Counted from the first letter of the stretch, positions 17,168-63,100 are shown. The stretch: 64,000 nucleotides of DNA from Macrostomum lignano (GCA_002269645.1 NIVC01001797.1:172195-236194); one strand, 5' to 3'. Notes: generated by a model not told the origin, from the letters alone. A program made the numbers and translations.

Positions 17168-17177
17168 TCTGGGTTTA

Positions 17178-17600
17178 TGATGCGGTCCAGTTTCTCTTTG
17201 AATTATAGACACAATGATGCGGTCCAGTTTCTCTTTGAATTATAGACACAATGATGCGGTCCAGTTTCTCTTTGAACTATAGACACAATGATGCGGTCCA
17301 GTTTCTCTTTGAATTATAGACACAATGATGCGGTCCAGTTTCTCTTTGAATTATAGACACAATGATGCGGTCCAGTTTCTCTTTGAATTATAGACACAAT
17401 GATGCGGTCCAGTTTCTCTTTGAACTATAGACACAATGATGCGGTCCAGTTTCTCTTTGAACTATAGACACAATGATGCGGTCCAGTTTCTCTTTGAACT
17501 ATAGACACAATGATGCCGTCCAGTTTCTCTTTGAACTATAGACACAATGATGCGGTCCAGTTTCTCTTTAAACTATAGACACAATGATGCGGTCCAGTAT
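17178..17600. repeat. 37-bp minisatellite (AATGATGCGGTCCAGTTTCTCTTTGAATTATAGACAC)
   Basis: Visible tandem array, ~11 copies. Confidence 0.95.
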
Positions 17601-18071
17601 CTGCTAGTTTTAAAAAGAATCATGCTTTTTTCTTTCCTAAGTGCTTTGTGCGTTCCATTTTCCACAGCTTCCACTGATCATAATTTTGACAAGCTGTCAT
17701 GGAGAGTTGACGTTTACTTGAAGCAATATTAGAAGCAGTTATTATTTACTATTATTATACAGCAATTAGTAAAGTACTATTAACTATATCTATATTTTTG
17801 TGTCACCTTTTTGAGTCTTACTCTCCATCTCTACTTGAGCGCAATGCAATAATGGTTTGCTCATTTTATCCGGACCGCGCATGCAAATCTTTCAAGCGGC
17901 TTAGTTTTGCTTTTGCATTTTTTTCTGCTGGCTAATAAAAGTTTGTAACTTTTCGGATTGTTGCGGAATATTCTCTAAGTAGTGACTGCATTTTTGCTGT
18001 TTGGATAAATTTTATTGAATAAGCAAAAGTTTGCGACTTTTAATTCTTTGTTCTTTGTCAGCGAGAATTGT

Positions 18072-24204: not shown

Positions 24205-24855
24205 AAAAATCAGAAACTGGACCGCATCATTGCAGCTGTGCTATCATAAATCAGAAACTGGACCGCATCATTGCAGCTGTGCTATCATAAATCAGAAACT
24301 GGACCGCATCATTGCAGCTGTGCTATCATAAATCAGAAACTGGACCGCATCATTGCAGCTGTGCTATCATAAATCAGAAACTGGACCGCATCATTGCAGC
24401 TGTGCTATCATAAATCAGAAACTGGACCGCATCATTGCAGCTGTGCTATCATAAATCAGAAACTGGACCGCATCATTGCAGCTGTGCTATCATAAATCAG
24501 AAACTGGACCGCATCATTGCAGCTGTGCTATCATAAATCAGAAACTGGACCGCATCATTGCAGCTGTGCTATCATAAATCAGAAACTGGACCGCATCATT
24601 GCAGCTGTGCTATCATAAATCAGAAACTGGACCGCATCATTGCAGCTGTGCTATCATAAATCAGAAACTGGACCGCATCATTGCAGCTGTGCTATCATAA
24701 ATCAGAAACTGGACCGCATCATTGCAGCTGTGTTATCATAAATCAGAAACTGGACCGCATCATTGCAGCTGTGTTATCATAAATCAGAAACTGGACCGCA
24801 TCATTGCAGCTGTGTTATCATAAATCAGAAACTGGACCGCATCATTGCAGCTTTA
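24205..24855. repeat. 41-bp minisatellite (AAATCAGAAACTGGACCGCATCATTGCAGCTGTGCTATCAT), ~15-16 near-identical copies
   Basis: Visible tandem array. Confidence 0.95.
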
Positions 24856-35700: not shown

Positions 35701-36545
35701 GTAGACAAACTGTAATGAAATAGCAATTAAAATTCTTATTCATATCCCAAAAGTGCGGTCACTAATATTTAAATACGGAACACAAACTTTATGTTTAATA
35801 AACAATTTCTAGTTTCACCTGTAAATGAGGCCACGAAGCTTCCAGTGTCGGGTCGTCCTCCTCCGGATCAAAGTCGGGGTTGTCGGAGGGCGGCAACGTT
35901 CGAAAGATGTTGCACGCAATCTGGCGGGATGAAGGGAGGCCGGGCGGGTGATAATTGAGCATAGTAAGCTGTTGATCAGCTTCCATCACTAGCACAGGAA
36001 ACCGCTGATCAGCTTCCATCACTAGCACAGGAAACCGCTGATCAGCTTCCATCACTAGCACAGGAAACTGCTGATCAGCTTCCATCACTAGCACAGGAAA
36101 CTGCTGATCAGCTTCCATCACTAGCACAGGAAACTGCTGATCAGCTTCCATCTGTATCACTCAAGCTCTCACTCACCATTCGAATAATCTCTGGATAAGT
36201 TGCATCTTGCAAAACGCCCCTAGTAACGGTGACATATTCAACTAATTCGTTAAGGCACGTCCGTTTAATCTCTTTGGATTTGACATCGGACACGGGATCG
36301 GAGAAGTCAAATACAACGCAGCACTGTTGCAACTTTTTAACAAACAACTCCTGCTGATCTGTGGCAGCGTCTTTCAACGGAGGCAGCTGAGTTAACTCCG
36401 TCGGCGCCTTCGGCCGGTAGTGAGACGAGCCGCGCGACCTTTTGGCGGCTTTTTTACTAGCTTTGAGCTCGTTTTTATTGCGGAACGGGTCGGTTTTGTC
36501 TTTGGCTGGGCCGCCATCGACTTTGCCAGCCGCTGCTGCAGACAT
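29707..36545 (-). CDS. PPP2R5: Protein phosphatase 2A regulatory subunit B' (B56 family, widerborst-like), ~461 aa. Exons 36545-36177, 35920-35819, 35709-35617, 34551-34027, 31269-31040, 29773-29707
   Basis: Hallmark B56 sequence: [96 protein letters not shown]|[13 protein letters not shown]. All junctions are GT-AG and in phase. Paralogue not resolved. Confidence 0.96.
30088..31020. repeat. 25/26-bp minisatellite (CAGCCCTCAGTTCACTCTATGACCCC), PP2A-B56 intron 5
   Basis: Visible tandem array. Confidence 0.95.
31300..33992. repeat. 28-bp minisatellite (GAATAAATGACCGGAAGTGAGGCTGGCT), ~95 copies, PP2A-B56 intron 4
   Basis: Visible tandem array, ~2.7 kb. Confidence 0.97.
34720..35000. repeat. 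Old degenerate ~58-bp tandem repeat with dimer structure, PP2A-B56 intron 3
   Basis: Recurrent CCATGGA...AAAGTTC...TCTAGAATCT.GA..GGAAAC.G. Confidence 0.65.
35970..36152. repeat. 33-bp tandem repeat (GCTGATCAGCTTCCATCACTAGCACAGGAAACT), ~5.5 copies, PP2A-B56 intron 1
   Basis: Visible. Confidence 0.95.
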
Positions 36546-37969: not shown

Positions 37970-38950
37970 CACATTCTTAATTTTGTTTTTCATGAGACAC
38001 GCAACTTTACCATAGTCAAAATTAAATTGCATAACTTTAAATTATACAGAAAAATTTGAATAATTTTAGAGATTATAACAAGGACTACTCAAATAACATT
38101 ATATATAGTACTCTACACTTGTGTTTCATGGAAATAGTTTTAAAGGCTGGTTTTACAAGAAAAATACACTGTGGAGATAGGAAATTTTATAATTTTCAAC
38201 ACTAAAACAGTGATTGGGTCTCTTAACAGTGTCAGAGAAAGTCATAATCATACTATTTTGTGTCTTACATGCTGCTGTAATGATGCATTAATCATTTTTT
38301 CATCTTAAATTGGTCTTGTAATTATTTTAAATGTTTTTTTCAAGACTTTTCAACAACTTTTCAAGTGACAAAAATACTTAAAATTTTTGTAAGTCATTTA
38401 TTGATAATTAATTTTTTATTAGATTGACTTAGTTAAGGTTTAGTATGGCTTTTAGAAGGTAAATTCTCTGCAAATAAGTCAGAGGCTCAGACTCTAAAGT
38501 GCCCATATTTAATTAATAAATTTATATAATTTGTATTAATATATTTCAATTATATTATATTTAATTGTATATCTGTCTATTTATCTTCTTATCTGCCTTT
38601 TAGTATGGCATTTTGTGACTTCGACCTGAAAATAACATCTATTCATAACTATAATACACAAGCTACTTTGAGTTGAATACTTTGCTAGGCCAAGTCTGCT
38701 CAATATATATGACCAAAACCAATACAAGTATTAAATATATATATAGTTTAGATAAAAACTAAATTTTACTCTAAATCCAAATACTAACCCCACTCCAGCT
38801 AAGTAGATATTCAACTTAGCAGAAATCCAAGCAAAGTTGGACTCTTAAAAATAAAAAATACTTTCTTCATAACAATCTATACTGGCAAGTGATGTACTGA
38901 TGTATCAAATGTTTAATTAGTTATATATCAATGTTTGTTTTTTATATAAG

Positions 38951-39240
38951 TGTTAGTCTAGGAAAACTGAGTCAAGTCATGTTTGCAAGCGAAGGAGAAT
39001 ACCATTGAAAGATCTCTACCGAAGTGACGAAAGTATTTATTTGACTACATAACACGAAACCACGTACATCAGTAGACAAATGCCATCCGATTGGCTGGGG
39101 GTTAAAACCATGCACACTGGCAAGCACAAATGTACACAGGTAGGGGTAAAACGATAGCGCGCAAGAATGATCAGTCACGGGAGGGAGAGAGAGAGAGAGA
39201 CAAGTGAAACAACATGAAAAACCAAAGTACAACCCCAACA
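38951..39240 (-). repeat. 3' LTR of Gypsy element (290 bp)
   Basis: Direct repeat of 43217-43506 with TG...CA termini. Confidence 0.97.
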
Positions 39241-39395
39241 CTGCTCCCCCCAAAAGCAGCAAAACAAAAAACAAAAGAAACCAAGACCTGTCCTTAGACC
39301 TTATAACAAACAGGTTTACGAGGCCGCAAATCATACGAGCTGTGGGGCTGGAGAGTCTTATCTCCAGAACTCAGCGGGGAGTCACAGTCAGTCAC

Positions 39396-42300
39396 CTAAG
39401 GTTCACGCAGCTCCGAGTCAGAGCCAGCCTTTGCACCCTGAATCGATAGCCCAGCCTGATCCTCGGATCCAGCCGCCTCGGTCAGCCGCCGATCGGCCTC
39501 CGCCTCCGGGCGGCAGCTCCATTGGTTTGCGTGCGCCATCCGCAGTCCACCGTCTGGTAGGTCAGCTGAGGTCACCAGAGCTGTGTTCCGGCCGTGCTGC
39601 ACGATGAACTTGGCCGGAACTGGAGCCGTGCCAGGCCGAGCCCTCAGCCAGATGGAGTCACCCACTGCTCGGTCATCGTCAGCGGATGGCGCAGCCGGCG
39701 TCCCCACATGAGAATGTCCGGCGAGCTGGAACAATTCCCGCTAGGCCTGCTGGTGCGAATGGTTAGGAGCAATTTCTGCAGGAACTGGTCAAATGGGACC
39801 ACTTTCGTCCACGTCTTCAGCCCGCCTTTGAGACTCCTCACCAACCGCTCAGCCTGCCCGTTCGATGCCGGATGGTACGGTGGGGTGTGCATCTCCTGGC
39901 AGCCGACACTGTTCAGCCACTGCGAGACTCTTTCCGACCTGAACTCAGGCGCATTATCCGACACTAGCGTCCGTGGCACTCCATTTCTGGCGAACACCGC
40001 TCTCAGCACTCTCAGCACACTGCCCGCAGACCTGTCTGGGACCTGGACAGCTTCTGGCCAACCCGAGTATGCATCAGACAGCAACAGTAGCAAGCCCACT
40101 CCTGGCACCTCACAGTGGTCCATGTGGACCCGGGACCACGGCTCGCTCTCGGATGGCCAGATGTCAATTTTCCGCTGAACCACCGGCCGTCTTTCAGCGC
40201 ACAGCTGACACCGCTCAACAAACTGACGGACATCGCGATCCAGTCCAGGCCACCAGAACTCCTTAGACACATGGGCCTTAGTATTTTCCGCGCTCAGGTG
40301 CACCTCATCATGCGCGGTCTCCAAAATGCGCCGCCGGAGAATGGTCGGAGGCACCACCCTGGTACCGTGGATGACCAGCCCGTTCTCCACAGACAACGCT
40401 TCCCAACACGCTTTGTACGGCCGCTCCAGCTGAGAGACCTGACCCCACCGGCCTGTCCTGATTCTCTGCTGGAGTCTTTGAAGCAGTGAACACTGGGAAG
40501 TACTTTCTCTCAGCTCCTCCACGGTAACCAAGCCTCCGTCAGTGATCCACTCAGTCTGGTGAACCGACTCCGTCTCAGGATCGAGGTTTTCAAAGCTCAG
40601 CCTTGATAGAGCGTCAGCATCCTGCATCTTCTTTCCCGGCACATATTCAATCTCGTAATCATAAGCCGATAGCCGCAGAGCCCACCGGGTTAGTCTGGCA
40701 GAAACAGTCTTTGGAAGATTCTTGCAAGGATTCAGAATAAACTTCAAAGGCTCGTGATCGGTCTGCAGAATGAATTTCTTCCCTAGCAACATTTTCCGAG
40801 CTCGTTCAACCGCCCAAACAATAGCCAGCACTTCTCTCTCGATGTTTGAATAGTTGGTTTCTGCCTGTGTGAGCGCCCTGGACATGAACATGACGGGATG
40901 TCCAGATTGGACCAGCACCGCGCCCAAGGACTTCTCGCTCGCATCGACTCGAAGACAGACAGGCGCGGAAACATCAAACGGCTTGATGCACGGGTTTGAG
41001 GCCAGACTCCTTTTGACCTCCGAAAATGCCGCCTCAGCCACCGCGTTCCATTCAAAGACCCGGTCACCGCGGCGAAGCTCCTGAAGAGGCCGACATTTCT
41101 CAGAAAAGTTTGGAACCAGCCGTCCATAAAATTGAGCCAGTCCTAGAAATCTCTCCAAATCTTTCTTGGTCTTCGGCACCTCGACATCCATCACACGTTT
41201 CACCATGCCCGGATCGGGTTTTATTCCTTCATCATCAATAATGTGACCAAGAAACTTCAGGCTGTTGGCTTCCATCACGCACTTCGCCTCGTTGATCTTG
41301 ACATTTGCGGCCTTTAACTTGTTGAGCACCTGCTCCCTAATTTTCTGCAACTCTGCCCGGCTTGCAGCACCGATCAGCACATCGTCCTGATATACTATGA
41401 CACATGGATGGTCTCCCAGGAGCTTTTCCATCACACGTTGAAAAACAGATGGCGACACCTTAATGCCATACGGCAACCGGTTAAACCTGTAGCAACCAAA
41501 CGGAGTGTTTATGGTGGTCACCGCCTTCGATTCCTCATCCAGGGGAACCTGATAGTACGCATCCGATAGGTCCAACCGACAGAACAGCTTCTTGTTGGCC
41601 ATTTTCGAAAAGGCTGTCTCAATCGAGGGAGTGAGGAAGGTCTGGTCTTGAACCAACCGATTAACAGCCGAATAATCTCCACAAATTCTCACGGATGCCC
41701 GATCTGACTTCACCGTCACCACAATTGGACTGCCCCATTCCGACGACATCACCTTCTCAACGATTCCAGCACTTTCCATCAGGTCCAGCTCCTTCTTAAC
41801 CAAGTGCTTCAGCGCTAAGGGCAGTTCTCTGGCTGCCTGGAAAATTGGCCTAGCTCCAGCACAAAGACGGATTTCTCCCGTAGCACCAGATATTCCCAAC
41901 AAGCTCTCATACCTGTTGCTGGCGGCTGACTCATCAGAACTGGCATGGTGCACCGGTGCGAGGACCAGCAGATTCCGGCCGAGCAGCCCAAACTCCTGTT
42001 GGCAGTCGATGACGGGCAGCTCTGCCGCCTTGAAGCGGCCGATGTTGCCAGTGGTCTCCACCAGGCATTCCAGAACGCCCATCTGTCTCATAACGTGTCC
42101 GTCATACGCCAGCATGCGCGACTTCGCCGACTTCAGCGGGGGCCTTCCGAGCTCATTCCAGATCCTTCGTGAGATTAACGAGCAGGAGGCACCGCTGTCC
42201 TTCTCCATCAGTACTTCTCTGTGATTGATTTTCACAGTGCAGAACTTGGCAGGCTTTCCTTCTCCACAGTAGAAAACGGGCTCATCACGATAGGAGTCTT

Positions 42301-43194
42301 CTGGACTCAGCTGAGTGCCGACTGCTTCAGCTGGGGCAGCGAAGTGGGTCCTGGCACCGCGGCACACACGGGCAAAGTGGCCAGGCTTTCCACATTGATT
42401 GCAGGTGGCTCTCAGGGCTCGGCAGTCAGCGGGCTTCTGGTGCGATCTCAACCCGCAACGCTGATAGCGCTGTTGTCCGAAGTTCTGCTTCTGCCTCATA
42501 ACCGAATTAACGTTGACAGAGCCGGAGCTATCCGGATGGCAGTGAGCTTCATCAGCCGTAGTCAGACCCGCGGTCGACAGCAACCTAGCCTGGTGCACCA
42601 CTGAATCCACAAGAGTCGAGTGAGCAGCAGCCTGGGACCCAGCTGAAAAGTTGCTGACCATCAGCAGCTGCTGAACATATTCTGTGACCTGATCGACCGT
42701 CAGTTCTTGAGTAACTTCACGCTCGAGCACCTTGTTCCTGATGTTCGAGTTGGCCAGACCGGCAATGAGCCGCATCTTGATGAGCGCTTCGGCGGGGTCC
42801 GCTCCTTCCTTTTTCAGGCTCTCGAACTCGCATACGACGGCTTGCTCCCTGAGACGAGCGGCATAGCTGGTGACGGTTTCGCCTTCGGCCTGGCGCATAG
42901 ACATGAAGGCTGTCCTCTCAGCGATCTGCAGTTTCTTCTTGGGCTCCACAAACGCCAGTAGGCATTGCTTGATTTCAGACCATTTCATCGCAGACGGGTT
43001 TTTGGAGCAACCAGCTGCTTGACTTTTATGAGCTCAGCGACCCCGAGGCAGCCCATGAAAGCGTCGGTCAGCGCTCGTCTCTCGTCGGTATCTTCGACTC
43101 CTTTGGATCTGGCCTGGGCGTCAAATACTTCAACCCAGGTGCGAAGCTCATCTATGTTGCTCAACGGCAGCGTCTCTCTCAATTTGATGCTCAT
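39396..43194 (-). CDS. Gag-Pol polyprotein of the Gypsy element. Main ORF 42988-39644; N-terminus (43194-42990) and integrase C-terminus (~39670-39396) are in other frames
   Basis: CCHC knuckle CNQCGKPGHFARVC, protease DSG, RT YQDD, RNase H VDAS...EREVLA, integrase HHCC (HDEVH...CQLC) and DDE (MDH, SDN, QAER). Two apparent frameshifts. Confidence 0.92.
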
Positions 43195-43216
43195 TATCCT
43201 GCTTGCGACGCCAAAA

Positions 43217-43506
43217 TGTTAGTCTAGGAAAACTGAGTCAAGTCATGTTTGCAAGCGAAGGAGAATACCATTGAAAGATCTCTACCGAAGTGACGAAAGT
43301 ATTTATTTGACTACATAACACGAAACCACGTACATCAGTAGACAAATGCCATCCGATTGGCTGGGGGTTAAAACCATGCACACTGGCAAGCACAAATGTA
43401 CACAGGTAGGGGTAAAACGATAGCGCGCAAGAATGATCAGTCACAGGAGGGAGAGAGAGAGAGAGACAAGTGAAACAACATGAAAAACCAAAGTACAACC
43501 CCAACA
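43217..43506 (-). repeat. 5' LTR of Gypsy element (290 bp)
   Basis: Direct repeat of 38951-39240, followed on the minus strand by the PBS. Confidence 0.97.
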
Positions 43507-43611: not shown

Positions 43612-44800
43612 ATGCCTATAAGATGCTGTATACCAAAGTGCAAAGGTAACCATACTAGTGAATCTGATAAGGTTTCAGTCTATGGTTTCCCTACTAACCC
43701 GGATAATCTCAAGAGATGGACCAATGCCCTTCCAAGCCAGATTAAGGTATAATTAAGGTATCTTTATTTGTTGTTTTTAGATTGTTACTCTTTCTACATT
43801 TGAAGTATTTGAATTATTATTGAACCCTATTCCCTTAACTTACAGACAGTTACCGAATTCATGGGTATATGCCAGCATCATTGGCCTAAAGATGTGTCCA
43901 TGCTAAAGGTCAAGCACTTTACTTGACCTGTTGTTCCTCTATTTATATTCCCTAATGTCTTGAAGAGCTCCTTGAAGTTAGACTCTGCCAAGTGAATATG
44001 CTACAAGTATTATTCACTACTTTTTTCTGTGCATATTCTGCATTTCACATGGACACAGATCTTTCATTATTGTGCCTATCTTTAGAGATATCTAGAAATG
44101 TTACAAAACAGAGTTTTGCTTGCCAAACAAACAGAGCTTCCTAATGAACTCAAGAAGTTCAATGCTGGTGACAAGATCTGCTCATGCTTATGGAATGATT
44201 TGGCCAACACTGCTGACTGTCTTGAGTTTGTTGAAAATCATGGGTGGCTTGTCCAGCAAGCAACAAAGCTTTAATTTATTATTATTTGGGACCTAACAAT
44301 TGAATTTTCTGTGACAGTTTGAGATGACCTCACTGTCTTGGTGCATCAAAAGAACATATTAATTTCAGTACACGACCTACTTGGATTCAAGTACCACTTG
44401 GAATGCCTTAGCCAGTTGGAGGCCATTGCTAATTGTGTTAGACAAGCTAGTATCATTGTGACTGAGGAGATCTCTAGTCACATGTCTGCAATGCAGGCTC
44501 TCAACTGCAAATCTGGTGACTTTCAACAGCAGTTCCTTCTGCACCAGTTGAACCTAAGAACAAAACAGTCAACTGGACAGTGCTACTTGCTGGAAGACAT
44601 TCTAACAGCTGCTAGATTGCTTTTTGCAGGGAGATGTGTAAATAATACCTTGCGAGACTTAATATCAGTACCATATAAAGTTATTATATAGCATTATCCT
44701 AGAGCCCTTAGTACAATAGCCAGTGATGAGGATTGTTGGTTGATTGTATAGGCTCAATTTGAATGTGCCAAAACCTCACAAAGGTGCTGCTCCATTAGAA
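43612..44800 (+). pseudogene. Decayed THAP-domain / P-element-type transposase remnant
   Basis: 43612-43746 spliced to 43846 reads MPIRCCIPKC...VYGFP...KRWTNAL...GICQHHW, a C2CH THAP pattern, then an in-frame TGA before PVVP. 44338-44691 reads FLLHQLNL..K..G..Y....L.AA.LL..G....LRDLISVP, like the P-transposase N-terminal region. No catalytic domain found. Confidence 0.7.
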
Positions 44801-48439: not shown

Positions 48440-51400
48440 ATGGAGCGAACTTCTGACTTAGCTAGATTGTCAGGTGAGTGCCTAAGTGGCAAAAAGGCTT
48501 TGAATGAAATTCATTGACAGCAGCTGCAACAGCTATAACTTCTACCCTCCCTCAGCCCTCAGTTGGCAGCTATTCCCTCTTACCCTCCCTCAGCCCTCAG
48601 TTGGCAGCTATTCCCTCTTACCCTCCCTCAGCCCTCAGTTGGCAGCTATTCCCTCTTACCCTCCCTCAGCCCTCAGTTGGCAGCTATTCCCTCTTACCCT
48701 CCCTCAGCCCTCAGTTGGCAGCTATTCCCCTCTTACCCTCCCTCAGCCCTCAGTTGGCAGCTATTCCCTCTTACCCTCCCTCAGTCCTCAGTTGGCAGCT
48801 ATTCCCTCTTACCCTCCCTCAGCCCTCAGTCGGCAGCTAATCCCCTCTTACCCTCCCTCAGCCCTCAGTCGGCAGCTATTCCCTCTTACCCTCCCTCAGC
48901 CCTCAGTTGGCAGCTATTCCCTCTTACCCTCCCTCAGCCCTCAGTTGGCAGCTATTCCCTCTTACCCTCCCTCAGCCCTCAGTTGGCAGCTATTCCCTCT
49001 TACCCTCCCTCAGCCCTCAGTTGGCAGCTATTCCCTCTTACCCTCCCTCAGCCCTCAGCTGGCAGCTATTCCCTCTTAGCTGCGGCAGCCAATCCCCTCT
49101 ATATTTTTACAGTCGAGCATCTGAACTCGCACAAGTTCGCTTCGAAAGGTCCGGATTGCAGGGGATGCCTCATCAGACGCGAGAAATGTCCCAAAACTGG
49201 GGAAGCTTTTTGTAAGTGTTAAACTAATTATCTTTATGCCTCACTTTCTGGATAAGAGATTGGAAGAGTCCTAAAACTTTCTGTCTCGCACACTCATACA
49301 CACGCTCACACAAAGTGTACGCTCGTACAGCGGCCCTTAGGCATGTACACTTTCTGTGCCTTCGGGTTGGCCATCATGGCTGTATCTCACGACAAACCTC
49401 CGGCCAATTTTCGTTCACAAGCTCTGTCCCCCGAATCTACTCGTAAGTGTCCATGTTGTTAACATCTCGATTTTATTGATCCAACTTTCAGACATGATTT
49501 ACCACGCCATCCTTCGAGCCCACCATCTGTTCCTGTTTTGTAACGAGAAAGCCGAATCTTGTCAGGGCGTCATCGACCTTCGACTACCAATGTGAGCGCG
49601 CCCCCCCCCCTGAACTGGCATCCACTCAGATAAACTGGCACTCACTCAGATGAACTGGCACTCACTCAGATGAACTGGCACTCACTCAGATAACCTGGCA
49701 CCCACTCAGATAAACTGGCACCAACTCAGATGAACTGGCACTCACTCAGATGAACTGGTACTCACTAAGATGACCTGGCACCCACTCAGATGAACTGGAA
49801 CCCACTCAGATGAACTGGAACCCACTCAGATGAACCGGCACTCACTTAGATGAACTGGCACTCACTTAGGTGAACTGGCAATCACTCAGATAAACTGGCA
49901 CCCACTCTAATAAACTGGCAGCTACTCAGATAAACTGGCACCCACTGTAATTAACTGGCACCATCCCCCAAAAGACGCCCCCCAATTAAAACCCCGGCCT
50001 CGCTAGTATAACAAATTATCTCGAACTCTCAAACTGTCAGCCGCGAATTCAAGCCGGACTCCAGCTGGCCTCACTGCGGCGAGTGCTTCGAGCTTGGCGC
50101 CGCCGCCGCCGACGCCGCCGACGCCTGGACGGTCGGCGTCCCGCTGTCCGGCGGCGGCCGCTGGCGGGGCCCGTTCAACGCCTACGCAAAGTCAGCCGTG
50201 TGCGGCCTGGAGGCACCTGGCGGCGAGGACGAATACGAGGACGGCGAGGAGGCCAACGAGGGAGGCGAGCTCGACGAGTTGCTGGCCTCGCTGCCCGAAC
50301 GACCGGCGCCCGCAGTCACCGAGTCGGCGTCTGCCTCAGATTCGGGAAGTTTTTCGAGGTAGGCCTAGTTCAAGCAATAGCAGCTCATTCTACTTGTCTA
50401 TGGCCCAAACATCGTCATATACTACTATTAACTACATACTACTATTTCATTACATACTACTATTTCACTACATACTACTATTTCATTTACATACTACTAT
50501 TTCACTACATACTACTATTTCACTACATACTACTATTCACAACATACTACTATTCACTACATACTACTATTTCACTACATACTACTATTTCACTACATAC
50601 TACTATTTCACTACATACACTATTTCACTACATACTACTATTTCACTACATACTACTATTTCAGCGGCAAGCCGCGACCTCCACCACCGCGTCGTCGGGG
50701 TTCGGTGCTCAGTGGAGGCCTCCCGGCGGCATCTTCCCCGTCGCCGTCGCCGACATTGCCGCTCGGCCAGACAACGACTCTGTCGCCGCCGCTGCCAACA
50801 TCGTCAGCGCCGGCGACGAAAGAGAAGCCGCGCCCGCCAGTGAGGTCGACTACATCCGGGCAGCCGGCACGTCCTATTTCAACGGAGCCCGACAGGCCGC
50901 AGCTGCCGCCGAAACTGCCTCCTTCATCTACCGAAACTCAGCCGTCATTGCCACCCAAACTGCCTCCATCATCTGCCACAAATAAGCCAATGCTGCCGCC
51001 GAAACTGCCTCCATCATCAACCGAAAGTCAGCTACCTCTGCCGCCGAAACTGCCTCCATCATCTACCGAAAGTCAGCTACCTCTGCCGCCGAAACTGACT
51101 CCATCATCTACCGAAACTCAGCCACCGCTGCCGCCGAAACTGCCTCCATCATCTACTGAAACTCAGCCACCGCTACCGCCGAAACTGCCTCCATCATCTA
51201 CCGAAAGTCAGCCACCGCTACCGCCGAAACTGCCTCCATCATCTACCGAAAGTCAGCCACCGCTACCGCCGAAACTGCCTCCATCATCTACCGAAAGTCA
51301 GCCACCTCTGCCGCCGAAACTGCCTCTATCATCTACCCAAAGTCAGCCACCTCTGCCGCCGAAACTGCCTCCATCATCTACCGAAAGTCAGCCACCTCTG

Positions 51401-54400
51401 CCGCCGAAACTGCCTCCATCATCTACCGAAAGTCAGCCACCTCTGCCGCCGAAACTGCCTCCATTATCTACCGAAAGTCAGCTACCTCTGCCGCCGAAAC
51501 TGCCTCCAGCATCTACCGAAACTCAGCCACCGCTACCGCCGAAACTGCCTTCATCATCTACCGAAAGTCAGCCACCGCTACCGCCGAAACTGCCTCCATC
51601 ATCTACCGAAACTCAGCCACCGCTACCGCCGAAACTGCCTCCATCATCTACCGAAAGTCAGCCACCGCTACCGCCGAAACTGCCTCCAGCATCTACCGAA
51701 ACTCAGCCAACGCTACCGCCGAAACTGCCTCCATCATCTACTGAAACTCAGCCACCGCTACCGCCAAAACTGCCTCCATCATCTACCGAAAGTCAGCCAC
51801 CGCTACCGCCGAAACTGCCAGCATCAGCGAACCAGCTGCCGCTGCCACCGAAGCTGCTCGTTGAGCCAGACAACCAGCCGCCGTTGCCGCCGAAACTGCC
51901 GAGCTTGCAGGTGAGTTTTCAGCCAACTCTGTTCGGCCTCCTGCACCACCCGAACGTGGCTCCATCAGACGTTCTGTGCAGCTACTATCGCAAGGGCTAC
52001 TACCCCGGCAACGATGTTAAAGAGGCCAAGCGGTGAGTTGCGTTTGCGTACGATGCGCGACTGTCGCTACTCTTGCGACTCAATGGCTACTCAATAGCTA
52101 CTCAATAGCTACTCAATAGCTACTCAATAGCTACTCAATAGCTACTCAATAGCTACTCAATAGCTACTCAATAGCTACTCAATAGCTACTCAATAGCTAC
52201 TCAATAGCTACTCAATAGCTACTCAATAGCTACTCAATAGCTACTCAATAGCTACTCAATAGCTACTCAATAGCTACTCGATAGCTACTCAATAGCTACT
52301 CAATAGCTACTCGATAGCTACTCAATAGCTACTCAATAGCTACTCAATAGCTACTCAATAGCTACTCAATAGCTACTCGATAGCTACTCAATAGCTACTC
52401 GATAGCTACTCGATAGCTACTCAATAGCTACTCAATAGCTACTCAATAGCTACTCGATAGCTACTCAATAGCTACTCAATAGCTACTCAATAGCTACTCA
52501 ATAGCTACTCAATAGCTACTCGATAGCTACTCGATAGCTACTCAATAGCTACTCGATAGCTACTCAATAGCTACTCAATAGCTACTCAATAGCTACTCGA
52601 TAGCTACTCGATAGCTACTCAATAGCTACTCGATAGCTACTCAATAGCTACTCGATAGCTACTCAATAGCTACTCAATAGCTACTCAATAGCTACTCAAT
52701 AGCTACTCGATAGCTACTCAATAGCTACTCAATAGCTACTCAATAGCTACTCAATAGCTACTCAATAGCTACTCGATAGCTACTCAATAGCTACTCAATA
52801 GCTACTCGATAGCTACTCAATAGCTACTCAATAGCTACTCGATGGCTACTCAATAGCTACTTAAGAGCTACTCAATAGCTACTCAATAGCTACTCGATGG
52901 CTACTCAATAGCTACTCAATAGCTACTCAATAGCTACTCAATAGCTACTCAATAGCTACTCAATGGCTACTCAATAGCTACTCAATGGCTACTCAATAGC
53001 TACTCAATAGCTCAAAACGCACCAACCCTGCGCAGTCTGATACGACACGCATCGGGCAACGGAGTTTACATGCTGCGCGGCTTCTGCCAGGGCCAACAGA
53101 GCCAGGAGCTGGCCGTCTGCCTTCGCCTCGACGATAAATCTTACAAATTCAGCGTGGAAGCGACGACGTCCGGCAGCTGCCAGCAGTTCTGCATCGCCGG
53201 CGAGAGCGGCGGCAGGGCGCACGAGACCGTCGAAGCGATGCTGTTCTACCATCACCTGTTCCCCATCCTGACTGGCACTGGGATGTCCGATATGCGACTG
53301 GCGAGACCCTTTGACTTGGAGTGAGCTGGGCGATGCATGTTCTCATGGATGATTTGTGTTCTCATGGGTGACTCGTGTTCTCATGGGTGGCTCGTGTTCT
53401 CATGGGTGGCTCGTGTTCTCATGGGTGGCTCGTGTTCTCATGGGTGACTCGTGTTCTCATGGGTGACTCGTGTTCTCATGGGTGACTTGTGTTCTCATGG
53501 GTGACTTGTGTTCTCATGGGTGACTCGTGTTCTCATGGGTGACTCGTGTTCTAATGGATGACGCAAATTCTTATAATCCATTCGGTGGTTGTCCTTCTCA
53601 GTAGAGACCCTTCGGTTTCTGTATGGTCACTATGGAAGCATGCTGTTAATTACGAATAAAAAAATGAAACATGAGAAAATTTTGCTCATAAACAATCGCC
53701 AGGAAGGACGCAATTGTCAGCGGTTTGACCGCCGCCTTTTCGGCCAGCCTGTGGCACTACGGAGGCAAGGCCACCTGCACCGAGTGAGTCATGGAGGCGG
53801 GCTGGGCTAGCAGCTGCGTGCTATTATTCAATTTAGACTACTGAGAAAAGTAGACAAGTAGAGATTTGAATAGTGAAATCTCTCACTAAGACGAAAAATG
53901 CCGCCATAAAAGAAATGACAGAATTACGAGAAGCGTCTGTGCACACCGATAGCGGTGAGAGAGAACGACGTGTGGGCTAGGGCTGACTGACGAAGGCGGA
54001 AAGCCAGAAACTGGTCTTGATCTGCCTGCGCAAGGTTCAAAACCCCACTTTTAGGGTGTCACATGCTGGAATTATTAGCAGGGCGGATTAACACAACAGA
54101 CTTTCGCACCAAAGAATCACACATTAACTCTGATGCGATGGCTCACACTGGGTGTACAGCAGCCCTGACTTTCTAACCGTCAGGCATGTACAGTCTGTGT
54201 GCCGTGGGGGTTGGCCTTCATGGGTAGGGGAATCGCACCCCCCTTTGGACTTTGGACTTTGATACGAGTATCAAAAAAGTTGCAGTTCAATGCTATCAGT
54301 GCACTGTAGATTCCCGGTTATTCATTGAATCCTTTCAGCGTTCTCGTTGAAGCAGCCGACGGTACGTACGCCCTTCGAATGGACTCCTATGACACCACCG

Positions 54401-57086
54401 TGCTGTGCGTTGTACAAAATGGTCAAGTCATGAAATTTCGCATCGTTGTGACAGCCGGTCAGCCCGGTAGCGACGAGGTTTGACTCGCTTGACTCATTTT
54501 TCTGGAACTTAAACTACGTCTTTAATACTCTACTGGCAGTAGTATCAGAATAATTTTTACCAGAAATAGACTTTAATACCATCAGCAGAAGGAAAAACAT
54601 GCTATAGATTCGCAAAGTAGATTAGCAATCCATTTTATCCTGTAGTATAATATTTGGGAATAGATTAGCAATCCATTCTATCCTGTAGTATAATAGGCGG
54701 GAATAGATTAGCAATCCATTCTATCCTGTAGTATAATAGGCGGGAATAGATTAGCAATCCATTTTATCCTGTAGGATAATAGGTGGGAATAGATTAGCAA
54801 TCCACAAAACACCCACCCGTCCCACCGCACCGCAGCTGATATTCGCCATCAACTTTCCGAATTCGAGCAAGTTCAGCAGCATCGAGGAGCTGCTGCTGCA
54901 CTATCACAAGAATCCCCTGCCAACTAACTCGCTGGGTACATCGGATCTGCTGCTGCGGATTCCTTTTCAGTTGTCTACGTAAGAATGTTGACCATGATGT
55001 CAAGGGCCGCGCTGTACACACTGTGTGAGCGTTGTGTAATGAGAGCGAAATGGGCAGAATTGCCTCAGCGCCAGGGTCAGAAGCCTCCGAATATTTATTA
55101 CTATATAAACCGCCTTCAGGAGATGCCAGCACGAACTCAGCCGCCTGGTCAGGCTGCCAGACGAGCAGGTGATTCGCAGCGGCACGGCTGATTCGGCTGC
55201 GGCGAAGTTGAGCCGACACGGCGGCGTCAAGCGCGGCGGTAATTTCTACTTGCATCTGAACAAGGAGCGCAAGGGCGGAGGCGGAACCCTGCTAGCTATT
55301 GCTCCGGATGCGGCCAGCTCAGGGGAGGTGCACCGGTTGCGCCTGGTTACCATGGAGACCGGATTTATCGGACAACCGCAGGTGATAATTTATTGATTGA
55401 GTAGTTCCCCTCGTGATCTAGTTACGGGCGAATTGCTGAGATGTCAAGGCTGAGGTCAGAAGCTACATGTAGTTTATTTAAAAACTTGTATTCGTCTACA
55501 CATACTAGTATAGATATAAACACGTTTGAGTTATATGGTGAGAAGCTCAATGGCTTTCAGCTCAACGTGGGGCAAGTCAGTGGAATCCCAGTCTGTGGAA
55601 TCCTGCAGTCTGTGGAATCCCAGTCTGTGGAATCCTGCAGTCTGTGGAATCCTGCAGTCTGTGGAATCCTGCAGTCTGTGGAATCCTGCAGTCTGTGGAA
55701 TCCTGCAGTCTGTGGAATCCTGCAGTCTGTGGAATCCTGCAGTCTGTGGAATCCTGCAGTCTGTGGAATCCTGCAGTCTGTGGAATCCTGCAGTCTGTGG
55801 AATCCTGCAGTCTGTGGAATCCTGCAGTCTGTGGAATCCTGCAGTCTGTGGAATCCTGCAGTCTGTGGAATCCTGCAGTCTGTGGAATCCTGCAGTCTGT
55901 GGAATCCTGCAGTCTGTGGAATCCTGCAGTCTGTGGAATCCTGCAGTCTGTGGAATCCTGCAGTCTGTGGAATCCTGCAGTCTGTGGAATCCTGCAGTCT
56001 GTGGAATCCTGCAGTCTGTGGAATCCTGCAGTCTGTGGAATCCTGCAGTCTGTGGAATCCTGCAGTCTGTGGAATCCTGCAGTCTGTGGAATCCTGCAGT
56101 CTGTGGAATCCTGCAGTCTGTGGAATCCTGCAGTCTGTGGAATCCTGCAGTCTGTGGAATCCTGCAGTCTGTGGAATCCTGCAGTCTGTGGAATCCTGCA
56201 GTCTGTGGAATCCTGCAGTCTGTGGAATCCTGCAGTCTGTGGAATCCTGCAGTCTGTGGAATCCTGCAGTCAGTAGAATCCCAGTCTGGAATGAAATCCC
56301 ATGGAGCAAAAAATCCACACGTTGAGCCCCTTCCTCTCAGCATCACTGCCCCTCAGCCATTTCATTTCAGACGGGGCGCCACTTTATTTCATAGGGGGCG
56401 CCTCTTTATTTCATAGGGGGCGCGCACTTTGTTTCAGAGGGGGGGGGCGCCACTTCATTTCATAGGGGGGGGGCGCCTCTTCATTTCAAAAGGGGGCGCC
56501 TCTTCATTTCATAGGGGGCGCCAATTTATTTCAGAGGGGGGCGCCACTTTATTTCATAGGGGGCGCCACTTCATTTCATAGGGGGCGCCACTTCATTTCA
56601 TAGGGGGCGCCACTTCATTTCATAGGGGGGCGCCACTATATTTGAGAGGGGGGCACCACTTCATTTCATAGGGGGGCGCCACTTCATTTCAGGGGGGCAC
56701 CACTTCATTTCATAGGGGGGCGCCACTTCATTTCAGGGGGGCACCACTTCATTTCAGTGGGGGCGCCACTTGATTTGATGGGCGTCATGTACTTTTACAG
56801 CCAGACGAGCATGCTCTCCTGTCTAAGCCCCATTTATGGCGTTCTGATCAATGACCTGAAATGACACACTGGGTGGGATTACCTGTGGTTGAGGATATTA
56901 AAATCCCATAATTTAAAACTTTCTCAGTCACTGCCTGATATTTGAACCAAAATATGACAGAAATTCGTGCACGTTGAAGACAAACCGGAGCTGGCCGCCC
57001 TAAGCCTGGACAGACTTGTTCACATCCTGTGCGCCAATCCCAGCTGCCTGCCGCAAGGATTCCCACGACTGTACATGAAACAGTGA
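48440..57086 (+). CDS. PH + acidic + Pro-rich repeat + three SH2-like domains adaptor (SH3BP2-like), ~984 aa. Exons 48440-48473, 49113-49211, 49492-49591, 50041-50358, 50665-52032, 53036-53320, 53703-53783, 54339-54477, 54836-54978, 55120-55381, 56961-57086
   Basis: PH-like: DCRGCLIRR...YHAILRAHHLFLF...GVIDL...CFEL...W. Acidic EDEYED motif. About 23 LPPKL repeats. SH2-1: YYPGNDVKEAKRLIRHASGNGVYMLR...TVEAMLFYHH. SH2-2: WHYGG...DGTYALR...FSSIEELLLHYHKNPLP. SH2-3: GNFYLH...SLDRLVHIL. All 10 junctions are GT-AG and phase-compatible. Domain calls are by eye. Confidence 0.75.
48540..49080. repeat. 38-bp minisatellite (CTCAGCCCTCAGTTGGCAGCTATTCCCTCTTACCCTCC), SH2-gene intron 1
   Basis: Visible, ~14 copies. 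Confidence 0.95.
49612..49960. repeat. 20-bp minisatellite (CTCACTCAGATGAACTGGCA), SH2-gene intron 3
   Basis: Visible. Confidence 0.95.
50415..50662. repeat. 18-bp minisatellite (CATACTACTATTTCACTA), SH2-gene intron 4
   Basis: Visible. It runs directly into the acceptor AG at 50663-50664. Confidence 0.95.
50900..51905 (+). repeat. Coding 45-bp tandem repeat (PPLPPKLPPSSTE[S/T]Q), ~23 units
   Basis: In frame within exon 5 of the PH-SH2 gene. Confidence 0.9.
52075..53012. repeat. 11-bp minisatellite (CTCAATAGCTA), ~85 copies, SH2-gene intron 5
   Basis: Visible. Confidence 0.97.
53335..53555. repeat. 19-bp minisatellite (TCGTGTTCTCATGGGTGAC), SH2-gene intron 6
   Basis: Visible. Confidence 0.95.
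54618..54803. repeat. 43-bp tandem repeat (AATAGATTAGCAATCCATTCTATCCTGTAGTATAATAGGCGGG), ~4 copies, SH2-gene intron 8
   Basis: Visible. Confidence 0.9.
55578..56290. repeat. 17-bp minisatellite (GTCTGTGGAATCCTGCA), ~40 near-perfect copies, SH2-gene intron 10
   Basis: Visible. Confidence 0.97.
56365..56780. repeat. ~22-bp minisatellite (GGGGGCGCCACTTCATTTCATA), SH2-gene intron 10
   Basis: Visible. Confidence 0.93.
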
Positions 57087-58924: not shown

Positions 58925-61900
58925 TTAGACAGGGATATTTGACAGAGAAGTGTCACCTGTGATTAGCACCTGTCGTTTCATAATAATAAATAATAATAAC
59001 AATATTAATTGACAACACCTACGATCGGAAGCGTCAGTTGCCGCCGAAGCTCCTGGTGCGGCTGGCTCCTCCCATGGCGGGACCTCTGCCCTTGTGGAAA
59101 CTCCCACGGCCTCGGAGGGATCCAAAGCGGGGATTGCTGGCCAAACCACTAAGCCGAAGCGCACCTATGCGGCTATGGAAAAGAGGCAGTCGGCCCTGAT
59201 TATCCCAGGCCAGGAGACGCCTCTTATGGCTGAACAGCTCGACCTAATCTGGTGCGGGTTGGTCTCCCACCTGGTCAAGATGGCCTTGAGCGGTACCGTC
59301 ATCCAAGTACTAAAGACGAAAGTCGAGGACCAAGCCCTTCACATCCAGCCCGCCGAGCGCCGACAGCCAGTCTGAGCAGCTGCGTCGCCTGCTAGTGGCT
59401 ACCAATCCGGAGCTGCGGGCCAATGGCGTCGTAGTTCACGAGACCATCTTCGAGCCTGGCGGAGACGGTTTCACGGCTATTCTTGGACTGTCGGATAACT
59501 GGATGCTCCGCTATCCGGACATGTCCCTCATCTCTGTCGGGCTGATACAGATTCAGATCTTCAGCTTTGAGTCTAACGCCACCCGCCCGCCGCCCCCAGA
59601 GAAGCGTAAGCGTGCGGGTGGGGGCTCTGCCGGGCGGAAACGCCCAGGAAAAGAAGCTCTCGTTCGTCACGACCCCTCCGAGGACGTGGACCCTGTCAGA
59701 GGGAAAGCCGCGAAAACTGCAGCAACAGGCGGACGTGGAAAGGGCTGGAAACCCGCCCGGAACACTATCCGCTCTGGTCTGACTCAGCGCACGAAGCAGC
59801 TGCTGGACACTGCCAAGGTTCGCAACCGCAGCAACTCCCAGCCCAGTGTCACGAGTGTCATGACCGGGCATCATCCTACTTCAGGAGCCCTGGACGAAGA
59901 AAGCTAAGATTCCGAATATTCCTGCTGATTTTGACTGTTTTCAGGACCCCTAAAACCCCAGAGCAGCCATATTCGTGTCTACCCATCTCAAAGCTTGGCA
60001 CAGACCGGACCTCTCTGACAGACCTCTGCGACATTCAATCAAACCACATAATCACCAATCTCACGGTCATCATCGCCTCGATTTTATCCCTGGCGATGGC
60101 CCCGCAGTTCCACCCAACCTCACCTCCCTCGTGGACTACTGCTCTAACCGCAGGTTTGAGCTGCTGGTGGCGGGCGACGTCAACGCCCACCACACCTGGG
60201 GCAGCAATGTAGTGAGTTGCAAGTGTACTTGTATGCGCCAGTCGCTAGAGCGGGGTGGGGGTTGCTATTGTACAGCATGTACGTGCTTTTCACCCACCCC
60301 TGTCTCTATCTTTTATACCCAGTTATGTAACAATCGTTGTATCGTATTTAACCTGCGTATCGATCTAATAAACGCCAAGAGGCTTCGTCAACTCTCAGTC
60401 GTATCTCTCTGCCTTAGTCTACAGCAATACCTCCAGCAGCAGAGGCGAGTGTTGTGGCCGCTGGCTAAATAAATGAAGTCAATTCAGTTGAGAGGAAAAG
60501 AGAGGAGAGCTGAGGAGAGGTGCTCTCAGCTGGTGGCTAGCATTCAATATATATTGTGCTGATAGATGTACATGTTTGCGAGTACGTTAAGCATGCAAAT
60601 TCACAACATCATCCCCCGTGCGAAAAGTGACAGAATACGGGTGGGACAAGCAGACGCAATAACGCAACCAATGTCAATGGAACAATTTTCGGTGCATGAG
60701 CAGTCAGTCAGTCAGGTCAGTCAATCACGGGTCACAAGATTGAGAGTCTCGGGGGCCAATCGGAGCTCTCTTGGCGTTAATGGCGTTAATGAAGTCGTCA
60801 GCTTCCCGAACCAGGGAAGGGAGACTATCATTCTGCCAAAGCTTACCGCCCTATCAGTCTGACGCCTTTCTTCCTCAAACTGATGGAACGGCTGGTGCTC
60901 TGACACCTCCTCCTCGTGGACCTGAGGAACTCCCGCTCTCCCCCAACCAGCACGCCTTGCGTCCTGGACGCTCCATCGAAAGTGCGCTGCATGATATTTT
61001 CGACAAGCTGGAGCGCGCCGTGCTCGGCAGTGGATACGCGCTCTCGCTTTCCTTGACATTGATGGAGCTTTCAATAATGTGCTTTTTGAAGTCTTTAGGC
61101 GGGCCCTGGAATCCCGGGGCACGCTAGAGCACCTTACCCGCTGGATCATGTACATGGTCTCCAATCGTACTGCCACCTCGCACCTCCTGGGACACTCTCG
61201 CTCTGTAGAGGTCCAGAAAGGCGGACCGGACCGCAAAGTGGGAGTCCTCAGCCCGATTCCCTGGAACTTGGTCATGGACGAGCTGCTTCTCTGGAGCCCG
61301 TATCCGGAACCTGGTTCAAAAGGTCGGCTATTTGGATGATGTTACCGCCACTGTGGCTGGACCATCACTCGCGGTTCTCAGAGACCTCCTCCAAGCCTTC
61401 ATCCACCGTGCCGAGCGCTGGGCGCACAGCTGCGGTCTCGGGTTATCTGAGTCTGGTGGCTTATCATTTTCACCAGCTGCCGAAACTGGAGGATTGAACC
61501 ACTCCCCCTCTATGGCAAACTCGTTGCCATGGAGAAACAAAACCAGATGTCTGGGCGTCACCCTCGACCACAGGTTGAGCTGGACCCCACACGTCCAAAC
61601 CAAAGCCGGCAAAGCTCTAGTGACTCGCGCGCAGATCTGCAGAGCTTTCGGCGCTACCTGGGGCCTCACCACACGCCGCCTCTGGTGGATTTACACTTCC
61701 ATTGTGAGACCGGCCATCTCCTTCACCGGCTTCATCTGGAACAGTGCCCTAGAGGTGAAAGGGGTTCTCGTGCAAGGCCGCGCTTATCACAAACTATCAT
61801 TAGTTTGATCATTATCCCTCTACGCCCTTTACTGACATAAACTCCTTCCTGAACATTCCCCCTTGACCTCTTTGTCAGAAGAGAGGCAATGAAGACCACC

Positions 61901-63100
61901 CGCCGTCTGAATGGTGTCATCATCCAGAAGCAGTTCGTTTTTAGAAAGCGGAACCTCCGGCCGCACGGCGACCTCAGCCTGCGAGACCTGAAAGCAGCGG
62001 AAGGCCTGCTGACCCTCTCGGACGGAATCCCGTCCACGCTCTGCCCTCCGCTCAAATTAAAAACCAGAATTCCACCACTTCATGAAGCAAGTGACAAATT
62101 GAAACCCCATGATATCCACTGATTCACTGAACGGGTCCCAAATCCACCCGCCTCTGGCTACGGCTACTGCATCGTGTCTGGAGGGAGAATCGTGGCGATC
62201 TTCTCTCAGCACCTGCTCCACCGGCTTCCAGAACGAAATTCTCGCCATCAGCTCCTGCGCCATGGAGCTGTATAAACATGCAGCGCTTCTGGGGGAAGGA
62301 GATTACCCTCCACTCGGACAGTCAAGCGGCGATCCACGCCCTTAAGCGCACCATCACCTGCTCGCGTACAGTCCTCGACTGCATCGGGCAGCTCAACCGC
62401 TTAGGCGCCTCTAACAAGGTGTCAGTGGATCCCCGGGCACTCGGGCCACCCCAGCAAAGAGTTGCCAAGGCTGGCTCGACCGGTTCTTTTAAAGCTCCCC
62501 TGCCCGTGGCCCCCATCCCACCCCCGTTTTTACCACTCGGATCAACCAGTGGGTGGCTTCTAAGCACAGGAAGAGGTGGGCTAACGCCCCCCGACTGCCG
62601 GAAATCCTTGTCTTTCTTCCGCCTTGCGCAGGGCCATGCTTGGCCTCAACCACAGGGACATCAGGGCGGTGACCATGGCCCTCTGGGTCATGGCTGTTTT
62701 GCCAGGCATCACCGCCTCCAGGGAAAAAATCTGTAGTGAGGAATGCCCCTTCTGCATCTCCGGTGTCGAGAATGCGGAGCACTTCATATGGGAATGCCCC
62801 GCCTTTACTCAGGATAGGCTCACCTACCTCGGCCCAAACCCGGACCTCTGCGACATTTTCAGGCCCGAGAATCTCTGCCAGCTCGTCAGCTACGAGCTAC
62901 CTAAGGGCTACCGGGCGAGCGACCATCCACCTCCTGGACTCTACGGAGGGGGACCGCGCTGCTGACACCGGCACCACCGGATCTCCCTGCGCGACACCGC
63001 AGCACTAGCTGCCCGTGGTCGCCAGGGGTTAGCGAACTGGGCGGCAATGCCCCCTAGCTGAATCAGAATGCCCGGAACCTCCTGCAGCTAAGTCAAGATA
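58925..63100 (+). mobile_element. Decayed non-LTR retrotransposon (LOA-like clade): ORF1 remnants, APE endonuclease, RT, RNase H, C-terminal Zn knuckle
   Basis: APE: LVDYC...LLVAGDVNAHHTWGSN (~60100-60460). RT: YRPISLT...LKLMERLV, FLDIDGAFNNV, GVLSPIPWNLVMDELL, YLDD (~60790-61350). RNase H: FQNEILAI, LHSDSQAAI (~62100-62480). CPFC...EHFIWECP (~62740-62800). Many frameshifts and stops. Ends approximate. Confidence 0.88.
60208..60423 (+). mobile_element. Solo LTR (216 bp) nested in the LINE endonuclease
   Basis: TGTAG...CTACA inverted termini, internal AATAAA (~60367), 4-bp TSD GCAA at 60204-60207 and 60424-60427. Removing it restores WGSNTSSSRGE. Confidence 0.85.

Follow-up and report, generated by a model that had tools for sequence, protein, structure and literature searches.

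An In-Frame Minisatellite Encoding a Putative High-Valency Array of Crk-Type Proline Motifs in an SH2 Adaptor-Like Gene of the Flatworm Macrostomum lignano

We analysed a window of 64,000 nt of DNA from the free-living flatworm Macrostomum lignano (NIVC01001797.1:172195-236194; all positions below are counted from the start of this window). The window carries a minisatellite of 45-bp units whose translation repeats the proline motif LPPKL. The locus raises the question of whether this array belongs to a protein and, if it does, what such a protein would do with so many copies of one short motif. The reading to which we lean, with moderate confidence, is that the minisatellite is translated and forms a very high-valency proline-motif array on an SH2 adaptor-like protein that would be specific to this lineage.

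Tandem Repeats Finder (TRF) located the array at 50902-51826, with a period of 45, 20.6 copies, 92% matches and 0% indels. On the plus strand, 20 homogeneous units of exactly 45 bp occupy 50900-51799; their consensus is CCGCTGCCGCCGAAACTGCCTCCATCATCTACCGAAAGTCAGCCA, which is translated as PLPPKLPPSSTESQP. They are followed at 51800-51925 (+) by degenerate 3′ units of 39, 42 and 45 bp, which keep LPPKL in each copy and have diverged spacers. The frame that starts at 50666 is open across the whole exon that holds the array (exon B, described below), and in this frame the array reads (P)PLPPKLPPSSTE[S/T]Q. Stops occur in the remaining two plus-strand frames solely in mutated units, and a direct reading of the consensus unit on the minus strand gave stops in all three frames.

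We counted 23 copies of LPPKL in the array; the first 20 intervals between them measure 15 aa, and the last two 13 and 14 aa. At the protein level this core is invariant (23 of 23 units). The exact hexapeptide PPLPPK is found in 15 units and the pattern PxLPxK in 19; the four units outside PxLPxK are near-matches of the LPLPPK or TLPPK type. The broader pattern PxxPx[K/R] occurs 21 times when two motifs that lie upstream of the array in exon B are included. A search with the 26-nt core pattern, allowing up to three mismatches, returned 20 matches, all within the array, and none in 100 shuffles. Divergence is concentrated at the ends: compared with the consensus, units 1, 2 and 3 have 4, 10 and 4 changed positions and the interior units 1-3, and units 21-23 carry in-frame deletions, with all edge-unit lengths (45, 39 and 42 bp) divisible by 3. 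These counts bear out the description given by a first-pass annotation of the same DNA, in which about 23 motif copies spaced by 15 aa stay in frame, the core is nearly invariant between variable spacers, and the end units have diverged most.

The array is composed of 37% proline, and of 61% proline, serine and threonine taken together. Every spacer contains an [S/T]Q and an SxxE site, and it is conceivable from these residues that the array could be phosphoregulated.

It has been reported that the N-terminal SH3 domain of CrkII recognises the consensus PxLPxK (PMC10279719), and that PPLPPK, a perfect motif of SH3 class II, is bound by Crk proteins (PMC10612106). For another protein it has been established by experiment that this same hexapeptide is a Crk SH3 ligand (PMC10612106, PMC10279719). 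The repeated core has the PxxP pattern, a basic residue two positions after the second proline and, as in the Crk type, leucine at the third position. By these residues the cores are class II proline motifs of the Crk N-SH3 type, that is, putative SH3 ligands, and the earlier assignment to the class II consensus agrees with both pattern counts given above.

The gene around the array is poorly represented in the existing annotation. The UniProt entry A0A1I8GWQ2 (P0001 below; 2139 aa, 'SH2 domain-containing protein') maps exactly to 34079-62881 (+) of the window and has the identical array. It is a chimeric automatic gene model, in which the real SH2 gene at 50.0-57.1 kb is joined to antisense open reading frames (ORFs) of a gypsy element on one side (39.4-43.2 kb) and to retroelement-like ORFs on the other (59-63 kb). 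Its small upstream exons at 49115-49210 and 49494-49589, together with the antisense gypsy ORFs, look spurious. We rebuilt the core gene from segments of A0A1I8GWQ2 and the genomic sequence. The rebuilt gene has eight exons, named A to H here, with GT-AG borders at all introns, consistent phases, and one frame of 906 codons that ends in TGA.

Exon A (50041-50358, +) is acidic and contains tyrosine (GEDEYEDGEE). No in-frame ATG was found within exon A. About 30% of M. lignano genes are trans-spliced, and the spliced leader ends in ATG (PMC8629364); it is a speculation that a leader ATG joined at ...aattcaag/CCGGAC (slashes mark splice junctions here and below) would be in frame with this gene. 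The acidic segment GGEDEYEDGEEANEGGELDELL of exon A (50228-50250) places a tyrosine in the acidic context that is typical of tyrosine-kinase substrate sites, and this tyrosine, once phosphorylated, may turn the protein itself into a docking site.

Exon B (50665-52032, +) comprises a proline-rich 5′ part, the array, and the start of SH2-like domain 1. Its upstream PxxPxR motifs are KPRPPPPRRR and KPRPPVR. It is bounded by the acceptor ctactatttcag/C and the donor AAGCG/gtgagt, and A0A1I8GWQ2 places its acceptor at 50896/50897 instead, which is likewise in frame. Exon C (53036-53320, +) encodes the remainder of SH2-like domain 1 (GVYMLRGFC ... VEAMLFYHHLFPI). Exons D, E and F (53703-53783, 54339-54477 and 54836-54978, all +) encode SH2 domain 2 (LWHYGGK ... 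GTYALR ... FSSIEELLLHYHKNPL). A third SH2-like domain and the C-terminus are encoded by exons G (55120-55381, +) and H (56961-57086, +), the latter ending in TGA, and the C-terminal end of the gene coincides with that of the paralog P0003. We had also considered a downstream part made of a single C-terminal SH2 domain ending at 53324, as in an adaptor of the BLNK/SLP-76 type. This was rejected, as GA/gtgagc is a donor and two more SH2-like domains follow.

The three domains differ in how clearly they are recognised. Domain 2 scored 19.8 bits against Pfam PF00017, just under the cutoff of 21 (E 8e-4), and the same domain in the paralog P0002 scored 30.3 bits. Every PDB match to a profile of domain 2 was an SH2 domain, with that of VAV2 in first place (E 5e-4). 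Domain 1 was aligned to domain 2 by hhalign with a probability of 96% (E 4e-9). Its best PDB matches were the SH2 domains of ABL, NCK1 and BLNK, which aligned over the full length at non-significant E-values (0.16 or worse; 0.61 for BLNK). Neither domain 1 nor the N-terminal part had a match in a Pfam scan, and a phmmer search of the PDB with domain 1 likewise returned nothing. Domain 1 (YMLR) and domain 2 (YALR) both have the conserved FLVR arginine, the residue that binds phosphotyrosine. In domain 3 (55220-55260, exon G) it has been lost: the segment reads GNFYLHLN here and GNFLVLRR in the paralog P0003. The order helix-strand-helix looks SH2-like, which does not count as evidence.

When the 136 residues that follow the array were used as query in an exhaustive HMMER search, three proteins matched, all M. 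lignano entries named 'SH2 domain-containing protein'; they are the UniProt model of this window and two paralog clusters, likewise from M. lignano. Paralogs of the gene include A0A1I8G3B9 and A0A1I8GQE0. The contig collection had no exact match to P0001 or P0002. Taken together, the layout of an acidic tyrosine-containing segment, a proline-rich region with the array, and three SH2-like domains is that of a predicted adaptor-like protein of phosphotyrosine signalling, the kind of setting in which SH3 ligands work. Because it has three SH2-like domains, the host protein is presumably cytosolic rather than secreted.

The paralogs suggest where the array came from. P0002 and P0004, which are 36-41% identical to this gene in the domains, contain one PPPLPPKPNSL that aligns with the last unit of the array (PPLPPKLPSL) within a linker that is otherwise poorly conserved. 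Unit 23, PPLPPKLPSLQVSFQP, aligns with the single PPLPPKPNSL of P0002 and is probably the ancestral copy. As the paralog has a single motif at the position of the last unit, one ancestral motif was therefore amplified in this gene. A conserved motif within a poorly conserved linker is, to judge from this alignment, the signature of a short linear motif.

We then compared synonymous and non-synonymous differences among the units, as the first-pass annotation had proposed. Across the 20 regular units there are 28 distinct variants, which we divided between the core (LPPKL) and the rest of the unit. The core has five synonymous and no non-synonymous variants, and elsewhere there are 6 and 17, so that variation in the spacers is mostly non-synonymous (Fisher p = 0.0047, a value that would be somewhat weaker in a mutation-aware test because three of the five core events fall at CpG guanines). 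The oldest units, 1-3 and 21-23, have kept LPPKL with 12-15 of the 15 core nucleotides, all changes being synonymous. The spacers of units 21-23 have fallen to 52-63% identity to the consensus and have sustained 6-nt and 3-nt deletions with the frame preserved. This pattern indicates that selection probably acts on the LPPKL core. The absence of stops from the array is uninformative in this respect, because only about one stop is expected among 28 variant events.

Based on these results, the most likely course of events can be outlined. A single ancestral PPLPPK just upstream of SH2-like domain 1 would have been the starting motif. Slippage or unequal exchange, as elsewhere in this genome, may have amplified it into 23 LPPKL cores, placed 15 residues apart in a putatively disordered segment rich in proline, serine and threonine. 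The SH2 domains would dock the protein at phosphotyrosine sites; the array would then recruit many copies of an SH3-containing partner, for which a Crk-like adaptor is the first candidate. The outcome could be high avidity or local clustering. That the array is translated, that its partner has an SH3 domain and that there is any clustering or condensate formation is what we infer from the features described above. Copy-number tunability and condensate formation are speculation.

Besides the CpG positions already mentioned, a number of points weigh against a translated SH3-binding array. The case for selection rests on few independent events, because the interior units, nearly identical to one another, are too young to have decayed much. 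AlphaFold2 gave a low predicted local distance difference test (pLDDT) score of 39.9 for domain 1, and one of 34.3 for the three-domain region with a 5-sequence alignment. No homologs outside M. lignano were found: word-indexed searches with domain 1, the three-domain region and eight units gave no match at all, and the exhaustive HMMER search with domain 1 gave M. lignano proteins only. There is no YxxP site for a Crk SH2 domain in the protein. Because partners of the Crk type bind ligands through one SH3 domain and this protein is without YxxP, a network would need some further interaction, and condensates would not follow automatically from binding. The motif, as read from its residues, also fits the WW ligand PPLP; a phase-compatible pair of splice sites at 50840 and 51922 could remove the whole array in frame; and the copy number of 23 comes from one assembly.

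The rival that survives best, which we consider unlikely but worth serious weight, is that the array is translated and that its extra copies are a tolerated by-product without selected function. On this account, minisatellite pressure would have expanded a motif-bearing linker that tolerates changes of length. The surroundings make such pressure plausible. Tandem arrays cover 34.6% of the window (about 35%), with 32 arrays of at least 150 bp, and 15% of the M. lignano genome is reported to consist of simple and tandem repeats (PMC5730564). The expansion is also recent, the interior units being near-identical and differing at 0-5 positions, and the variation of the spacers looks neutral, with 6 synonymous and 17 non-synonymous changes against a synonymous site fraction of about 0.27. 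Against such an account, none of the 23 cores has a non-synonymous change, not even in the old edge units, where the spacers have been replaced, and every length change is divisible by 3.

The same surroundings bear on the proposal of the first-pass annotation that a genome-wide tendency to amplify repeats had been captured in an exon. The exon-like context, the splice phases, the paralog motif and the repeat-rich window all speak for capture, and that the exon is translated stands only as our inference. The open frame runs on into conserved sequence at either side of the array, and the splice sites that flank it are in matching phases. Of the other 31 arrays that reach 150 bp, three have a period divisible by 3, and the LPPKL array is the sole in-frame array of its kind among the 32 of the window.

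A more far-reaching version of the SH3-binding reading can also be formulated. The protein would have about 20 equally spaced docking motifs of a high-affinity Crk/SH3 type, and their copy number would vary between Macrostomum lines or species, or be adjusted through alternative use of the CAG at the unit ends, and would thereby set the threshold for clustering or condensation in a phosphotyrosine pathway. We regard this as doubtful. If it were true, repeat instability across the genome would have been put to use in evolving the valency of a short linear motif, and the locus would illustrate this directly.

A further possibility is that the array is a multivalent proline motif read not by SH3 domains but by a group II WW domain or, less likely, by an EVH1 domain or profilin. 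Group II WW domains are defined by their ligand PPLP, which according to Bedford et al. (1997) reportedly overlaps with SH3 ligands. This WW-ligand motif is present 15 times in the array. Against such a reader, the invariant part LPPKL includes the lysine that defines class II or Crk-type SH3 ligands, and the first proline of PPLP has been lost in eight units. Because the invariant element includes the lysine and excludes this first proline, SH3 is favoured over WW, and we consider a non-SH3 reader improbable. There is no FH2 domain, and the array contains neither runs of four or more prolines nor an F/W/LPPPP motif. A role like that of formin FH1 was also tried and rejected, in that FH2 was absent from Pfam scans of the flanks and PPPP from the array.

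It is less probable still that the array lies outside the mature protein, as an intronic minisatellite or as an exitron (a potential in-frame one of 1083 nt, 50840-51922, +) removed through the 50840/51922 pair or through a CAG at a unit end, with the gene models misread. The donor CCA/GTGAGG at 50840 is the sole consensus-type donor upstream of the array, and the acceptor is gtgagttttcag/CCA; both are in phase 0, and a phase-0 CAG stands at the end of every unit. The genuine splice sites of the gene are rather weak, resemble this pair and are no stronger than it. In addition, unrelated minisatellites fill introns of this gene (five of the seven, with periods of 18, 11, 19, 43 and 17/22), and the existing model A0A1I8GWQ2 is a poor automatic chimera. 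However, excision would lose unit 23, which carries the motif conserved in the paralog, and would leave the synonymous-only variation of the core (p about 0.005) unexplained. The period of the array and the lengths of its edge units are divisible by 3 and differ from the periods of the verified intronic arrays of the gene (11, 17, 18, 19, 22 and 43 bp), and the sequence has proline-rich coding character on either side of the array. Constitutive removal of the array is unlikely, and an alternative isoform without it is possible.

Other splicing arrangements were rejected. The segment CAG/GTGAGTTTTCAG/ at 51908-51922 in exon B is a perfect mimic of a donor that directly abuts an acceptor, and it encodes Q-V-S-F-Q; as an intron, GTGAGTTTTCAG would have merely 12 nt. 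Joining the donor at 51911 to the acceptor at 53035 would combine incompatible phases and run into a stop codon. A splice that bypasses the array by joining the exon A donor, which is in phase 2, to the phase-0 acceptor at 51922 would not keep the reading frame.

As for the number of copies, it is equally improbable that 23 is an artefact of collapse or expansion of a real array in a single long-read assembly of a hidden-polyploid genome: assembly of this genome is reported to be difficult owing to repeats and duplicated chromosomes (PMC5730564), and the count rests on one assembly-derived sequence, the UniProt model with the identical array probably coming from the same assembly, but an array of about 1 kb is easily spanned by single PacBio reads, and its unit variants follow an ordered, non-periodic pattern that is atypical of collapse.

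We next compared the putative SH3-binding array with known systems. The ligands of the Crk N-SH3 domain, among them C3G, DOCK180, the PEAK pseudokinases and the NS1 protein of avian influenza A strains, use the same motif, PxLPxK, which in NS1 takes the form PPLPPK (PMC10279719, PMC10612106). In these ligands, too, the motif lies in a (putatively) disordered region of a cytoplasmic signalling protein. They carry from one motif to about four, C3G having about four Crk-binding motifs, whereas the array described here has 19-23 putative ones, gained by recent in-frame tandem repetition.

The engineered poly-proline-rich-motif (poly-PRM)/poly-SH3 pair and the Nck/N-WASP and Grb2/SOS/LAT systems likewise combine regular class II motifs with flexible linkers, and in them valency sets the threshold of assembly (PMC12860260). 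As the number of tandem PRM modules in engineered systems goes up, the saturation concentration goes down (PMC12860260). The usual valency of these phase-separating scaffolds is 3-5, whereas the array considered here is natural and, as judged from its sequence, of far higher valency.

A bacterial parallel is offered by EspF and EspFU/TccP of enteropathogenic and enterohaemorrhagic E. coli, in which coding tandem repeats carry an SH3-binding proline motif in each unit. The number of these repeats varies between strains, and more repeats cause stronger clustering of the host protein. EspF and EspFU are secreted bacterial effectors with 2-7 repeats, and their 47-residue units bind a second host domain. 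In contrast, the present protein would be an endogenous animal SH2 protein with 15-residue units, and there is no sequence relationship between them.

SLP-76/BLNK and the SHB family share with this protein a common layout, in which an acidic N-terminal part with tyrosine is followed by a proline-rich SH3-binding region and a C-terminal SH2 domain. Unlike SLP-76/BLNK, the present protein has three very divergent SH2-like domains in tandem and neither SAM nor PTB. Membership in the SLP-76/BLNK family, in which a single SH2 domain lies at the C-terminus and SLP-76 has a SAM domain at the N-terminus, was rejected: HMMER with domain 1 returned only M. lignano proteins, the BLNK SH2 domain was one of several non-significant matches (E 0.61), and there was no SAM match.

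Proteins with coding variable-number tandem repeats (VNTRs), such as the proline/threonine/serine (PTS) regions of mucins, are similar in having head-to-tail units of lengths divisible by 3, a homogenised interior, diverged edges, and a composition rich in proline, serine and threonine. Here, in contrast to mucins, the host is an SH2 protein that is presumably cytosolic, and what is kept invariant is a short linear motif for binding rather than a glycosylation-rich stretch. By composition a mucin-like role would fit, but an SH2 protein is unlikely to have one.

Multivalent proline-motif scaffolds and coding minisatellites are thus both already known. What is new is their combination and its scale, namely about 20 exact motifs of the Crk type that appear to have arisen by recent expansion in a lineage-specific protein with three predicted SH2-like domains. 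The valency of proline motifs and SH3 domains is central to models of signalling clusters and condensates, and it has been studied mostly with engineered repeats or with proteins of few motifs. A natural array of valency 19-23 would be a test case for the evolution of motif number and for its effect in vivo. M. lignano is open to transgenesis and RNA interference, and minisatellites arise in its genome at an unusual rate. Should the array prove to be neutral or spliced out, it would be a useful caution on automatic gene models in repeat-rich genomes.

The other minisatellites of the gene were located by the tandem-repeat scan. An 18-bp array (50419-50663) fills the intron directly upstream of exon B, and an 11-bp array of 85 copies (52078-53012) fills the intron directly downstream of it. 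Later introns contain arrays of 19, 43, 17 and 22 bp at 53338-53562, 54618-54804 and 55575-56776.

Some arrays elsewhere in the window have a core in common. The core GATGCGGTCCAGTTTC is shared by three arrays (15559-16239 +, 17177-17602 + and 24207-24852 -), one of which is inverted, and the core CAGCCCTCAGTT by two (30089-31022 and 48543-49078). Shared cores in arrays of differing period suggest dispersed related families, which were perhaps carried by a mobile element.

The window also contains parts of other genes and elements. The first coding exon of a gene for a PP2A B56 regulatory subunit was found at 36141-36545 (-) (Pfam B56, E 1.4e-20). The 36 kb to the left of this exon, presumably introns of the B56 gene, are packed with minisatellite arrays. 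On the plus strand at 59000-63000 there are overlapping ORF fragments with RNase H-like and C-terminal Cys/His motifs, which we read as a degraded non-LTR (long terminal repeat) retrotransposon; Pfam gave no match to them at E <= 0.01.

A young gypsy-type LTR retrotransposon lies at 38948-43506 (-), between LTRs of 293 nt that are 99% identical (38948-39240 and 43214-43506). Its gag-pol ORF of 1114 aa (39644-42988) is intact and has Pfam matches to protease, reverse transcriptase, RNase H and integrase. Beside the 3′ LTR there is an ORF fragment of a THAP zinc finger (43612-43749, +; Pfam THAP, E 2e-6), which is probably the remnant of a transposon.

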